A stretch of 64,000 nt of DNA from Octopus sinensis (lineage: Eukaryota), in contig NW_021833638.1 in assembly GCF_006345805.1 (NCBI RefSeq), positions 1 through 64,000 on the forward strand, written 5' to 3'. Made by a program: the position numbers and the translations under genes. The notes beneath the pieces were generated by a model. The model worked only from the letters and a program-made list of their open reading frames with translations, searched no databases and was not told where the DNA came from. This document shows positions 1,209 to 56,870 of this stretch, one piece after another; position 1 is the first letter of the stretch, and every line of letters begins with the position of its first letter.

Positions 1209-1705
1209 TAAAACATTATTGGTGAATTGAAGAAATGGAGCTGAACGCAGATTGAACAGAAATCGTTTTATTTTTCATTCTACACGTGTTCGAAAGGCAC
1301 AAATTAACCAAAATCCGATTGAATAATGGGACCATATTGTGTCTTTCTCTCTTCAGGAAGAAAAAGGAAATCCGTTGGAAATCCTTTTCCTTTTTTCCTT
1401 TTTTCTTCCTGAAGAGAAAGACACAATATGGTCCCATTATTCAATCGGATTTTGGTAATTTGTGCCTTTCGAAACACGTGTAGAATGAAATAAACGATTT
1501 CTGTTCAATCTGCGTTCAGCTCCATTTCTTCAATTCACCAATAATGTTTTAATTTCAATTATCCGCACCAACGCACGGTTGCAACGCCAGATGGTTGTAC
1601 CTCCAACCGTGCTGTTCACTGCTGTGATTTTTGCTACTAAGTATCGGTTAAACTTTTGATTATCTACTACAAGATTATTCATCTTTCTATTTCAACATAA
1701 TCTAT
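1209..1705. mobile_element. Fold-back element with hammerhead motifs, probably a PLE pLTR derivative
   Basis: Near-perfect inverted arms 1209-1370 and 1394-1551 with a 23-nt spacer. The right arm continues about 155 nt further to (TA)n, and both ends abut (TA)n. Confidence 0.8.
1401..1490 (+). ncRNA. Minimal type I hammerhead ribozyme motif
   Basis: TTTTCTTC-CTGAAGA-(stem II GAAAG...CTTTC)-GAAA-CACGTG-TA-GAATGAAA. The core is intact and stem III is palindromic. A mirror copy lies at 1273-1364 on the minus strand (GAA instead of GAAA). Confidence 0.75.
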
Positions 1706-2560
1706 TATATATATATATATATATATATATATATATATGTGTGTGTATGTGTGTGTGTTGTGTGTGTGTGTGTGTGTGTGTGGTGGTGTGTGTGTGTTTG
1801 TGTGTGTTTGTCCCCGTAACTTGCGGTTCGGCAAAAAGAAACAGATAGAATAAATACTAGGCCTAAAAAGAATAAGTCCTGGGGGTAGATTTGATTGACA
1901 AAAGGCTGTGATCCAGCATGGCTACAGTCGAATGACTGAAACAAATGAAAGAATAAAAGAATATATATATATATATATATATATAATTACGTCTATATAC
2001 ATATATTATGTGTATATACATGTATACGCTTGTACATTAATAATAACCATGTGCGTATTGAGTACGATCATGTGCTTGTACGCTTTTCTCCACTGCTTTT
2101 TTTTTATTATCATTATTGTTTATCTGGAGACACATGATATGATTTAAAAAGAAATATCTCGTGTGTCCTTATACATATATAACAGGAACATGTATACACA
2201 AACGTGTGCATTTCCATGCTGGTATTTATTTTATAAGAAATTGTGTAACTGTGTGACTGTAGGTGTTCTCGGTCCTCACGTATCTAAGTGTCAATATATA
2301 GAGTTACCTTCGTGGGTGAGAGCTTTTATGTTTGTGATCAAGCGTGAAGAAAATATGCATACGAAATGATCAACGTACACACGTTGCATTTAAGCTATTA
2401 AATTTATGTTTGTACATGAATAAGATTTTATATATATGAATTTATATATATATATATATATATAGATATATATATATATATATTATATATATTAAATATA
2501 ATATATGATATATATATATATTATATTATATATATATATATATATATATATATATATATA

Positions 2561-2961
2561 GGCGCAGGAGTGGCTGTGTGGTAAGTAGCTTGCTAGCCAT
2601 CCACATGCTTCCGGGTTCAATCCCACTGCGTGGCATCTTGGGCAAGTGTCTTCTGCTATAGCCCCGGGCCGACTAATGCCTTGTGAGTGGATTTGGTAGA
2701 CGGAAACTGAAAGAAGCCTGTCGTATATATGTATATATTTATATGTATGTGTGTGTGTGTCTGTGTTTGTCCCCCTAGTATTGCTTGACAACCGATGCTG
2801 GTCTGTTTACGTCCCCGTCACTTAGCGGTTCGGCAAAAGAGACCGATAGAATAAGTACTGGGCTTACAAAGAATAAGTGCCGGGGTCGATTTGCTCGACT
2901 AAAGGCGGTGCTCTAGCATGGCCGCAGTCAAATGACTGAAACAAGTAAAAGAGTAAAGAGT
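2561..2961 (+). mobile_element. SINE family A, full length
   Basis: tRNA-like head GGCGCAGGAGTGGCTGTGTGG...GGTTCAATCCC, internal TA/TG tract, and 3' tail GGCGGTGCTCTAGCATGGCCGCAGTCAAATGACTGAAACAAGTAAAAGAG. Confidence 0.9.
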
Positions 2962-3660
2962 ATATAGTCTAAAGGCTATGTATTACTCATAAAATACAGT
3001 GTACATTTAAATACATAAGGAATCCACTCGTGGGATTCATCACGCTAGAAAGAACAGCTAGGTTCCATAACCACAAAATTAGGGATAAAATCCTGAAAGG
3101 AACGAAAAGAAAAAAAAGAAAAAAAAAACTTTTACCATCTAGCTTCCTGGACCAATAGGTTTCTGATTTTAGTTTAGCAAATAAAAAATAATAGTCGCTA
3201 GGTGAAATCGTCGTCAACAGGTACACCTTAGATTAAATATATAAAACACGATGCAATCAATTATATGCCTCTTGTTTATATATCCTAATTTTTTCGAAAT
3301 CTACTGCGCAGACGCAGCCCCTTGTCGGCTATAAAAAAATTTCGAAATTATCCCAAAACTTACAATATACATGTACACACACACACACACACACACACAC
3401 ACACACACACACACACATATATATATATATATATATATATATATATATATATAATGATATGTAGAAAAATACAAACTGAGACAAGAATGCATAAGAACTT
3501 AGAAGACGATACAACAAACACAGACAGGACATTCGAAGCCCTCAGTCTTCAGTCAAGAACCGGATCATCGTAGTAATTTCGGCTGATTAATCTTGAGATT
3601 ACTAGAACCGGCCAGCCCTCCAGGAGAAACTAAGCAACGAGCATTAGAAAAACATATATA

Positions 3661-53740: not shown

Positions 53741-55124
53741 TGGCGCGTGAATACACTTTCTGAAACTGTCTGACAAAATCTAGGACTAGGCTGCTGCTCT
53801 GACGTTATCACACAGATGCTCTAATGTAACCGAAGTGGATGTTGGTGACTTAAGAGTCACCACTTCCCCGGTTAACTAAAACACATTCAACTATAAACAG
53901 ATGATAGACGTGTATGTCTTCCGCTAACAATGGCACGTTAATACAAACTAACTGGAATACCCATCATAAACACACGCAGACAAGCAGACACTTACATTTA
54001 TACTTATGTATACACATGTACGAACCACTTACAAACACATACACTCGCGGACACAAACATAAATGCACACGTACTTGTGTGATTGCTTAACAGTTACTTT
54101 TCTTTCTTTTTTTGTGTGTGTGTTCCTTTGATAATTCATTGTATTTTTTGTGTTTTCGGTTAATTTTTCGTGGTTATGTATTTTCACTACAACGTTTAAC
54201 CCTTTCTCCAATGACCTCATTCAGTTTTTCATCTCGTGTCTTCAATGTGGAATCTGTAATCCATCAAACAGATCTAAATACACTAGCATATTATGTTTAT
54301 ATACACCCACAAATGCAGAAAGCATCATGTGTTTGTGTATATATATTTGTATGCAGTCTGTATATCAGTGTGTGCGTGTGTGGATGTAAATGTAAATTCT
54401 TAGAATTTGAATTATAATGGTGTGTGGTCGTTTTCTATAAAAGGAAATGTAGACTATTTGTTATGAAAATTCTTTTTTTTTCTTAATTTTTTTATGAAGA
54501 CGGTTTCCTTCTGATGTTTGGTGAGAAACATCCGACTAAATGACTTTTATAGAGAATAGTTTATTTCTTCTGAGACGATATGGGAACCTCCAGTGCCATA
54601 ATTCAACTAACTCGAGACGACAGCTGAAATTACACCCGGCTGTCCTGTGTCATCTTAAATGCATTATAAGGCGGTCAGCTAGCAGGAGGCGGTGAGCTAG
54701 CAGAACCGCAACAAAAATCGGACAAATTGCTAAGCGACATTTCTTCCGGATCTTAAGGTTCTGAGTTCAAATATCACCGAGATCAACTTTATCAAGTACC
54801 AGTGACATACTGTGGTCAATATAATGGACTTGTCCCCCTCCCTTCAAGATAGCTGACCTTGAACTCTACAACGGACTGGCATCTGGTTCAAGATGTTGTG
54901 ATCCCGGTTACCATGGAAACTGGGTAACCAGCCTTATGAGTCCTCGGGCTGACTCAAGAAAAATAAAGCCACAAAAAACATTCTGTCTTAAAACAACAAC
55001 TACACTTAATCGCATGTCGGCTCCATCAATGCTTTTATTACCATGACAGTAACAGCAAGAACAACAACTGAACCAAAGAAAAATATAATCTGGAATTCAC
55101 ACTGACGATCATCAAGTTATATTC

Positions 55125-56370
55125 TTACTCTCTTTTACTTGTTTCAGTCATTTGACTGCGGCCATGCTGGAGCAGCGCCTTTTGTCGAGCAAATCAACCC
55201 CAGGACTTATTCTTTGTAAGCCTAGTACTTATTCTGTCGGTGTTTTTTGCCGAACTGCTAAGTGACGGGGACGTAAACACACCAGCATCGGTTGTCAAGG
55301 GATGTTGGGGGGACAAACACAGACACACAAACACATACTTATATATATATATATACATATACATATATCCGGCGGGCTCGTATGTGTAAATTCTTAAATG
55401 ATATTTTTGTTTTTCACTAGAATTATAAAAGATTGAAGAGAAAGTACATGAGAGTTAGACACTTAATTCTGGATAATCTATTCTGGAATAAAGTAATGGC
55501 CTATTCATGCACTTACTGAAACTGTCTGGCAAATTCTAGGACTTTAATGCTATACTCTCTTTACTCTTTTACTCTTTTATTTGTTTCAGTCATTTGACTG
55601 TGGCCATGCTGGAGCACCGCCGTTAGTCGAGCAAATCAACACCAGGACTTATTCTTTGTAAGCCTAGTACTTGTTCTATTGGTCTATTTTGCCGAACCGT
55701 TAAATTACGGGGACTTAAACACACCAGCATCGGTTGTCAAGCGATGTTGCGGGGCGGGGGGGGGGTGACAAACACAGACACACAAATATATACACACACA
55801 TACATATATATATGCATATATACGACGGGTTTCTTTCAGTTTCCGTCTACCAAATGCACTCACAAGGCTTTGGTAGGCCCGAGACTATAGTAGAGGACAC
55901 TTGCCCAAGGTGCCACGCAGTGGGACTGAACCCGGAACCATGTGGTTGGTAAGCAAGCTACTTTTTTACTCTTTTACTCTTTTACTTGTTTCAGTCATTT
56001 GACTGCGGCCATGCTGGAGCACCGCCTTTAATCGAGCAACTCGACCCCGGGACTTATTCTTTTGTAAGCCCAGTACTTATTCTATCGATCTCTTTTGCCG
56101 AACCGCTAGGTAACGGGGACATAAACACACCACCATCGGTTGTCAAGCAATGTTAGGGGGACAAACACAGACACGCAAACACACACACGCATATATATAT
56201 ATACATATATACGACGGGCTTCTTTCAGTTTCCGTCTACCAAATCCACTCGCAAGGCATTGGTCGGCCCGAGGCTATAGTAGAAGACACTTGCCCAAGGT
56301 GCCACGCAATAGGACTGAACCCGGAACCATGTGGTTGGTAAACAAGCTACTTAACACACAGCCACTCCTG
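55125..56370 (-). mobile_element. Three SINE family A copies (55125-55380, 55552-55962, 55963-56370)
   Basis: The last two abut directly head to tail and differ in sequence, so they are separate insertions. Confidence 0.85.
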
Positions 56371-56452
56371 TATCAAGGACCTATAATCCTTTAGGGGATG
56401 CTAGCATTCTAGGTCTTTCGGTTTATATAGGTATACAAAATATTTATGAATG

Positions 56453-56870
56453 AAAAAAAGAAGAAATTGGAGAAACTGGCACGCAGACATCAGTTTATTT
56501 AGAAATATTCAAATCCATATAATGAAATTCCAGTTCTGCAACTGTTTCCATATCCAATTAGTTCAATTACAGAAACTAAATTCAATTAATTTACTTCAAA
56601 TTTTCAGGTTCAAACCGAGTCAGTCGTAGGTCAACCAACACGATGAAATGTAACTCTCTTTTGGAAAAGTCTTCTCTGATGAAATGCCAAATTATCCGGT
56701 TTCAAGATAAAAATGTAAATTAATTTAATTTAAATCAATGTAATTTAATTTCGGCAGTTTAACTTATTGGATATAGAAACAGATGTAGGGTTGGAATTTC
56801 AATAAATGTATTTCAATATTTTTAAAATAAACTGATGTCTGCATGTCAATTTCTCCATTTTCTTGTTTTT
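56453..56870. repeat. Old fold-back (about 150-bp arms)
   Basis: 56453-56601 versus the reverse complement of 56717-56870, about 80% identical by eye. Confidence 0.7.

Follow-up and report, generated by a model that had tools for sequence, protein, structure and literature searches.

The inverted-repeat structures L1, L2, and L4 in a 64,000-nucleotide stretch of the Octopus sinensis genome (assembly GCF_006345805.1, contig NW_021833638.1, positions 1 to 64,000; hereafter the window) derive from Penelope-like elements (PLEs), a clear case of known biology. In each structure, a longer copy is linked via its 5' end to a shorter inverted copy of the same element. L4 is itself a PLE, encoding a reverse transcriptase (RT), a Cx4CxxC linker, and a GIY-YIG endonuclease (EN). 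L1 and L2 are short noncoding RNAs with a PLE-type hammerhead ribozyme and 3' module, which, by analogy of architecture, were probably mobilized in trans by PLE copies elsewhere in the genome. The arrangement recurs in related PLEs, and in every case exactly one of the two outer ends carries an additional tail. Our preferred interpretation, which we hold to be the probable one, is that L1, L2, and L4 are products of the PLE integration reaction, each formed in a single event in which both target strands served as primers.

Gapped self-alignment of the window returned inverted duplications at all five loci for which they had been predicted (L1 to L5; BLAST E values of 1e-28 to 0). In L1, a near-perfect 343-bp palindrome occupies positions 1209-1551, and the 154 nt after it (1552-1705) are unique. 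In L4, arms of ~2.1-2.2 kb (43327-45506 and 46425-48560) flank a 918-nt unique center (45507-46424). The L2 arms (28188-28365 and 28483-28661) lie within an insert spanning 28177-28688. L3 consists of a palindrome (33659-33886) with a 61-nt extension (33598-33658) on one side only, and the arms of L5 (56423-56602 and 56722-56904) are 79% identical. The original prediction had most of these loci abutting (TA)n or (TAA)n. This holds for L1 and L4, which have (TA)n on both sides, and for L3, which adjoins (TAA)n and (TA)n, but not for L2, in which (TAA)n is located within both arms and not in the flanks. Comparison of the outer ends and protein mapping bear out the proposed 5'-to-5' joining and the nesting of the short arm, which falls short of the longer one at both ends in L1, L2, and L4. 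Protein mapping places the 5' ends of L4 at the center and its 3' ends outward; for L1 and L2, the central position of the 5' ends was deduced from the strand of the hammerhead.

An assembly or read artifact, such as fold-back chimeric long reads, had been named in advance as the finding that would undo this picture. The window shows ~1.3% single-base indel noise, typical of an uncorrected long-read consensus, and inverted PLE structures are known to be hard to assemble (PMC8557442). However, the outer arm boundaries coincide precisely with element termini, beyond which the two flanks are unique and differ from each other, and the arms of older loci differ by 8-19% substitutions. In addition, opposite-orientation junctions cannot come from repeat-overlap mis-joins, and like architecture is found in five other independent assemblies. 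Judged from these features of the sequence, an artifact is extremely improbable.

That the largest locus is a PLE, as predicted, is supported by several comparisons. In a tblastn search, the minus-strand copy spans amino acids (aa) 1-752 of an intact relative, P0003, and the plus-strand copy begins at aa 284. Open reading frame (ORF) fragments of L4 bear PLE RT motifs and a GIY-YIG endonuclease motif (IYVLTCAGC..YVGQT, 44087-44533, minus strand) that lies C-terminal of the RT, with the linker, CARSNCGTC, upstream of the GIY-YIG domain. The stitched translation matches RVT_1 (31.1 bits versus a cutoff of 29.6); its Pfam GIY-YIG score of 18.4 bits is below the cutoff of 22.6, and full-length homologues carry PF01541. 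The same translation has 1577 homologues with RVT_1, HTH_animal, DUF8422, and GIY-YIG domains; those with names come chiefly from bivalve molluscs and show ~45% identity. No further PLE coding fragments were found elsewhere in the window. L4 is probably a young PLE and, on its linker motif, a candidate member of the Neptune/Nematis clade. An inverted copy of the pseudo-long terminal repeat (pLTR) type is present in L4, and there is no direct pLTR.

When frameshifts are allowed for, the long copy aligns with aa 5-752 of P0003 at 58% identity; the alignment contains 30 evenly spaced single-base frameshifts and no in-frame stops. The two L4 arms differ by 20 substitutions (1.0%) versus 61 indels, and 42 of 49 one-base indels fall in runs of identical bases. 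Measured between 43327-45506 and 46425-48560, the consensus of the window carries ~1.3% single-base indels, mainly in homopolymer and dinucleotide runs, to which the apparent frameshifts in L4 can be attributed. The view that both copies are dead, based on their many frameshifts, was dropped in light of the excess of indels over substitutions and the lack of in-frame stops. Because no in-frame stop remains once this noise is allowed for, the long copy may be a very young PLE, possibly intact and autonomous. The noise level suggests an uncorrected long-read assembly, so ORFs anywhere in the window may falsely appear frameshifted.

Hammerhead motifs and the short elements

Hammerheads were located with two descriptors. 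A relaxed one, coded from the published definition of the minimal hammerhead ribozyme (min-HHR), yields six matches in the window versus 0.43 expected from shuffled sequence: one in each arm of L4, one in the right arm of L2, and three elsewhere. An L1-type descriptor, with a long helix II and a palindromic helix III, has its sole match in the window at 1409-1482 and none in 100 shuffles, and helix II of L1 is also predicted by folding. The claim that both arms of L1, L2, and L4 carry hammerheads stands insofar as the motif is present in each arm, but the copy in the second arm is degenerate in both L1 and L2, with GAA replacing GAAA in L1 and a C at position 16.1 in L2. The hammerhead of L4 lies ~100 nt from the 3' end shared by the two arms, or 143 nt when the tail is included. 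Its U3-A8 core and CCGG helix III are common to the related elements L002, L008, and L010 (described below), with covariation in helices I and II, and in all but one of 11 related PLE copies a hammerhead lies 45-143 nt from the 3' end.

In the whole window, no Rfam family reaches its gathering score, the hammerhead included. At E ≤ 10, no hammerhead is among the matches listed for the whole window (150 of 352) or among the four matches for L2 alone; both scans gave spurious matches resembling microRNAs (miRNAs) on hairpins and microsatellites. That the Rfam models do not score these hammerheads is the expected outcome, since min-HHRs have a minimal helix III. Thermodynamic folding of the hammerhead regions as monomers gave no significant signal (z from -2.1 to +0.8); min-HHRs are reported to work as dimers and with protein assistance. 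We regard the hammerheads in L1, L2, L4, and their relatives as ribozymes predicted at the motif level. Two side observations were made. The related locus L003 contains, at ~10010-10050 and in a mirror copy, a hammerhead whose helix I is perfect over 9 bp and whose helix III is CCGG, but which has only UAG in the place of helix II (CUGAAGA-UAG-GAAA) and is either an extreme minimal variant or inactive. The L1 palindrome (1220-1540) matches the Rfam model of the plant MIR5048 precursor with 106 bits (E = 2e-22). It scores because it is a long hairpin, and PLE fold-backs could be misannotated as miRNA precursors in the same way.

Six hammerhead inserts are present in the window, of which three are fold-backs and three are single copies (Table 1); no tandem copies were found among them. 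The short elements display hallmarks of PLEs: a hammerhead 60-105 nt from the 3' end, with its cut 62-105 nt from the end when any tail is left out of the count, a distance like that in PLEs; a tail that is optional or one-sided; and insertion into (TA)n. The two copies of the ~190-nt family differ by a 40-nt 3' extension (57780-57819), absent from the copy that ends at 23383; this is the optional PLE tail on a noncoding element. In L2, whose arms differ by 11.4% substitutions, the 5' part contains a B-box-like sequence, GAGTTCGATTCC, and a likeness to tRNA, both seen by eye; ARAGORN predicts no tRNA there, and Rfam gives no tRNA match. The 32-nt hammerhead core of L2 had no matches in a public metagenome scan. 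A 9-bp candidate target site duplication (TSD) brackets the entire L2 fold-back, and repeats of this type arise by chance at a rate of ~1.75% in this microsatellite-rich window.

These hallmarks are consistent with the original prediction that short ribozyme-bearing RNAs are mobilized in trans by a PLE, although no sequence link to an autonomous partner was found. L4 had been put forward as the driver. Its long copy may be autonomous, as described above, but its U3-A8/CCGG hammerhead differs from the C3-G8 type of the short elements in the window, and no 3' sequence similarity between L4 and these elements was found. L4 is for these reasons not established as their driver, which, if it is a PLE, would be located elsewhere in the genome.

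Tails, related loci, and the integration reaction

Ten related PLE loci (L001 to L010) from other assemblies were compared; they were sampled through intact ORFs on long contigs and are a biased sample. Five of them (L001, L003, L007, L008, and L010) contain a head-to-head inverted copy, with arms that are 99.1-99.97% identical in independent assemblies. In L002, two copies meet tail-to-tail over (TA)n to form a palindrome, and L006 is arranged as a direct tandem array. L010 additionally has direct pLTRs, and L004, L005, and L009 are single copies. (TA)n adjoins every sampled 3' end. Routine production of palindromic inserts, as originally proposed, therefore finds support in half of the relatives, but three of the six hammerhead inserts in the window consist of a single copy. 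Two further inverted repeats were noted in this set. The L002 palindrome (7354-13456) is 6.1 kb long and 99% identical, comprising two full PLE copies with a polarity opposite to that of the head-to-head pairs. Just downstream of the single PLE copy in L009 lies a 249-bp inverted repeat (10525-11176; 98.8% identical, spacer ~155 nt) that may be another short fold-back insert.

The five head-to-head relatives carry tails of 21-40 nt at one end only. Together with L1, L2, and L4, all eight head-to-head structures have exactly one tailed outer end, a pattern with P ≤ 0.004 if the two ends were independent. Five of the head-to-head structures have the tail on their longer copy. In L008, it is on the truncated 1.56-kb arm and the long copy lacks it, the two arms being separated by a unique center of 2.1 kb; in L007, it is probably on the shorter copy as well. 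A rule by which the short arm is always nested, or the tail always on the longer copy, is thus ruled out by L008 and probably by L007, and the nested geometry that had been offered as a general feature of the system is not one.

These observations bear on how the structures form. In a fold-back model, the first-strand cDNA snaps back and primes its own copying, or the RT switches to the nascent cDNA, copying toward the 3' end. This was proposed for head-to-head PLEs with junction palindromes (Arkhipova et al. 2013, PMC3846280). It would account for L1, L2, L4, L001, and L010, in which the longer arm contains all of the shorter one and more, and the central loop of L1 is just ~24 nt; for such nested cases, self-priming is possible. 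In L008, and probably L007, the shorter arm bears the tail and is hence no subset of the longer arm. Because the tail of L008 is on the truncated arm, neither arm was copied from the other, which argues against a simple fold-back. Moreover, the centers of L4 (918 nt) and L008 (2.1 kb) would demand long-distance snap-back, and the junction microhomology that was to be looked for is not evident at the L4 center, nor is a palindrome. As a general explanation, fold-back self-priming is unlikely.

Two independent insertions of one family in opposite orientations into a shared (TA)n hotspot would produce a similar appearance. This PLE clade targets (TA)n strongly, as seen at the sampled 3' ends, and L002 has two copies placed tail-to-tail across such a tract. 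Yet no microsatellite remnant exists at any central head-to-head junction, in the window or in the relatives, the candidate TSD brackets the whole of L2, and the arms of young pairs are 99-99.97% identical. Neither the one-tail asymmetry in eight of eight structures nor the head-to-head arrangement of half of the sampled loci is what this scenario would give, and we consider it very unlikely.

The observations are better accommodated by formation of the head-to-head arrangement in one insertion event. We propose that an RT-EN protein, probably a dimer, would cut both strands of an AT-rich or (TA)n target, and that two cDNAs would then extend toward each other, halt at different points through independent 5' truncation, and be joined at the center. 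Two alternative RT start sites, one used on each strand, would leave a tail at only one outer end. The outward 3' ends, the unique flanks, and the lack of microsatellites at the central junctions are consistent with this scheme, as are the large unique centers of L4 and L008 and the existence of non-nested pairs, and the candidate TSD around all of L2 is consistent with a single event. Cleavage and extension of both target strands have been observed in vitro, with a predicted dimer, and the tail was explained there as the stretch between two RT start sites (PMC11167929). In the PAc system of that study, 85-92 nt separate the hammerhead cut from the RT start (PMC11167929), with which the position of the hammerheads described here, 45-143 nt from the 3' end, is broadly consistent.

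Several points weigh against priming on both strands in a single event. Nothing directly shows that the arms derive from separate RNA molecules, the three cases in the window are nested and equally compatible with fold-back, and a single tail for each insertion does not follow from the scheme alone. The TSD of L2 is only suggestive, at a chance of ~2%; the 154-nt extension of L1 is far above typical tail length; and the relatives are a biased sample. Trans mobilization of L1 and L2 rests on shared architecture, with no similarity to a known autonomous partner found. The anatomy of the loci, their PLE identity, the conserved hammerhead, the asymmetry of the tails, and the recurrence in relatives are observed; priming on both strands, copying of two RNA templates, and trans mobilization are inferred from them.

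A more specific version of this proposal, which we advance tentatively and regard as doubtful, is that head-to-head double insertion is the coordinated, template-independent output of a dimeric PLE complex with nonequivalent protomers, acting on any RNA with a hammerhead-proximal 3' module, including very short ones resembling short interspersed elements (SINEs). If true, the distal RT start site would be used by exactly one of the two cDNAs, so that each insertion acquires a single tail, and from non-nested pairs such as L008 it would follow that every event copies two RNA molecules.

Table 1. Coordinates of PLE-derived and other inverted or hammerhead-bearing features in the window
Feature	Position	Strand	Remarks
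L4 long PLE copy	43280-46424	-	full coding region ~46350-44105; 3' untranslated region ~760 nt; tail
L4 short inverted copy	46425-48560	+	5'-truncated at aa 284; runs straight into (TA)n; tail absent
L4 tail, 47 nt	43280-43326	-	only at 3' end of long copy, before (TA)n; from outer-end comparison
L4 predicted hammerhead, U3-A8 core variant	43418-43453	-	UAUUC/UUGACAA/GUC..GAC/GAAA/ACCGG/UU/GAAUA; relaxed descriptor
L4 short-copy mirror hammerhead (predicted), ACGGG variant	48441-48476	+	relaxed descriptor
L1 long copy	1381-1705	+	hammerhead 1409-1482 (CUGAAGA, 11-bp helix II, GAAA-CACGUG-UA); 154-nt one-sided extension 1552-1705
L1 short inverted arm	1209-1380	-	degenerate hammerhead; 2.5% substitutions between arms
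L2 long copy	28386-28688	+	tRNA-like 5' part; internal (AAT)n; hammerhead 28562-28607; 27-nt tail 28662-28688
L2 short inverted arm	28177-28385	-	32-nt hammerhead core 28251-28282 same as other arm; position 16.1 mutated
L2 candidate TSD, TTGATAAGA, 9 bp	28168-28176 and 28689-28697		brackets entire L2 fold-back
Single noninverted hammerhead element, ~190-nt family	23208-23383	+	inside (TA)n; tail absent
Second single copy, same ~190-nt family	57620-57819	+	inside (TA)n; 40-nt tail 57780-57819
Single hammerhead element	24656-24774	+	CUGAUGA, 7-bp helix II, GAAA-CAGCUG-UA; 3' end at (TA)n
L3	33598-33886		palindrome 33659-33886 plus 61-nt one-sided extension; (TAA)n and (TA)n flanks
L5, old inverted duplication	56423-56904		arms 56423-56602 and 56722-56904; 119-nt center; 19% substitutions

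L3, L5, and other repeats in the window

L3 and L5 had been counted as probable members of the same system. Neither contains a hammerhead, and no PLE similarity or coding sequence was found in them, so that a link to PLEs is not demonstrable for either locus. They could instead be hairpin miniature inverted-repeat transposable elements (MITEs), foldback DNA transposons, or local inverted duplications unrelated to PLEs. In addition to the features they lack, both are AT-rich hairpins adjoining TA repeats, like many TA-targeting MITEs. On the other hand, a single-arm relative of L3 at ~35870-36055 includes the L3 extension. This relative shows that the family unit is one arm and that the short arm of L3 is truncated at its outer end, as in the PLE structures; both loci also adjoin microsatellites, as PLE inserts do. 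As for the usual marks of MITEs, the L3 family is represented by just two copies and L5 by a single one, and the microsatellite flanks make TSDs unreadable. For these two loci only, an origin unrelated to PLEs is a serious possibility, although we place it below an even chance.

Two other repeats were noted. An abundant tRNA-derived SINE is present at 12155-12578 as a head-to-head pair, its tRNA-like heads meeting at the center and its 3' ends facing outward. The two copies are ~76% identical and lack a hammerhead, (TA)n, and an obvious TSD; the pair may reflect chance adjacency of a dense repeat or a like geometry produced by a different RT. A ~400-nt repeat family has at least eight direct and inverted copies in 50813-56371 and 60777-63984, including a tandem pair (55570-55963 and 55975-56365). 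No hammerhead was found in this family, one unit of which has a reversed tRNA-like segment and an internal microsatellite.

Comparison with known systems

Each of the main features has been published before: the inverted 5'-truncated copy, the one-sided tail, the (TA)n bias, pLTR hammerheads, trans mobilization, both mechanisms of the original prediction, and opposite-strand min-HHR pairs. An adjacent inverted 5'-truncated copy, a one-sided tail of 30-40 bp, and a (TA)n bias have been described for PLEs (PMC8557442), and the head-to-head structure was also reported together with the self-priming hypothesis (PMC3846280). L4 resembles the EN+ PLEs with a Cx2-5CxxC linker (Neptune/Nematis) in having an RT followed by a C-terminal GIY-YIG domain, a Cx4CxxC linker, and a hammerhead in the 3'/pLTR region, as well as in its adjacent inverted 5'-truncated copy, one-sided tail, and insertion into (TA)n. 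It differs from published members in lacking a direct pLTR, in its tail of 47 nt (versus 30-40 bp), and in its U3-A8 hammerhead core. Pen2a-type insertions of A. vaga likewise have a tail at one inverted end, there with TSDs of 8-10 bp, and unrelated sequences are trans-mobilized via pLTR sequences (PMC3846280). Unlike in Pen2a, the putative cargo here is very short hammerhead RNAs, one of them with a head resembling a tRNA, and each arm is built from an entire short element.

The hammerheads themselves match the min-HHRs described in PLEs and genome-wide in PMC4209133 in their CUGANGA or UUGANAA core, the unpaired nucleotide before helix II, G10.1-C11.1, the palindromic helix III, and a helix I of 4-5 bp. 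In Schistosoma mansoni, pairs of min-HHRs on opposite strands 100-700 bp apart were reported (Cervera and de la Pena 2014, PMC4209133). L1 and L2 are exactly such pairs. Pairs of this kind were left unexplained in that work; here they are resolved as head-to-head 5'-truncated copies, each pair the product of one insertion event. A further comparison is with the non-LTR retrozymes (Cervera and de la Pena 2020; Li et al. 2026 preprint), which are also short, nonautonomous, and PLE-linked, with type I hammerheads. However, they form head-to-tail tandem arrays and circular RNAs, and their copies are classed in those papers solely as monomers or tandem arrays, whereas the elements of the window are single or inverted and never tandem. 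Like twin priming by the L1 retrotransposon (distinct from locus L1), the proposed reaction would use the second target strand as a primer and create an inversion inside one insertion. Twin priming gives nonoverlapping inverted segments; here the arms overlap fully and both include the same 3' region, which indicates that one RNA, or two RNAs, were copied twice.

The small addition made here is that short hammerhead elements are resolved as head-to-head single-event inserts. PLE integration is the least understood mechanism of eukaryotic retrotransposition, with in vitro work available only since 2024. The loci described here provide clean natural products of this reaction at two scales, a 5.3-kb autonomous-type element and noncoding elements of 0.3-0.5 kb, and they supply sequence criteria for separating the models, namely, one tail per insertion and whether or not one arm is a subset of the other. 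The opposite-strand min-HHR pairs left uninterpreted in 2014 gain an explanation from these loci. For genome annotators, palindromes in (TA)n are to be expected as derivatives of PLEs and not taken for MITEs, miRNA hairpins, or assembly errors.

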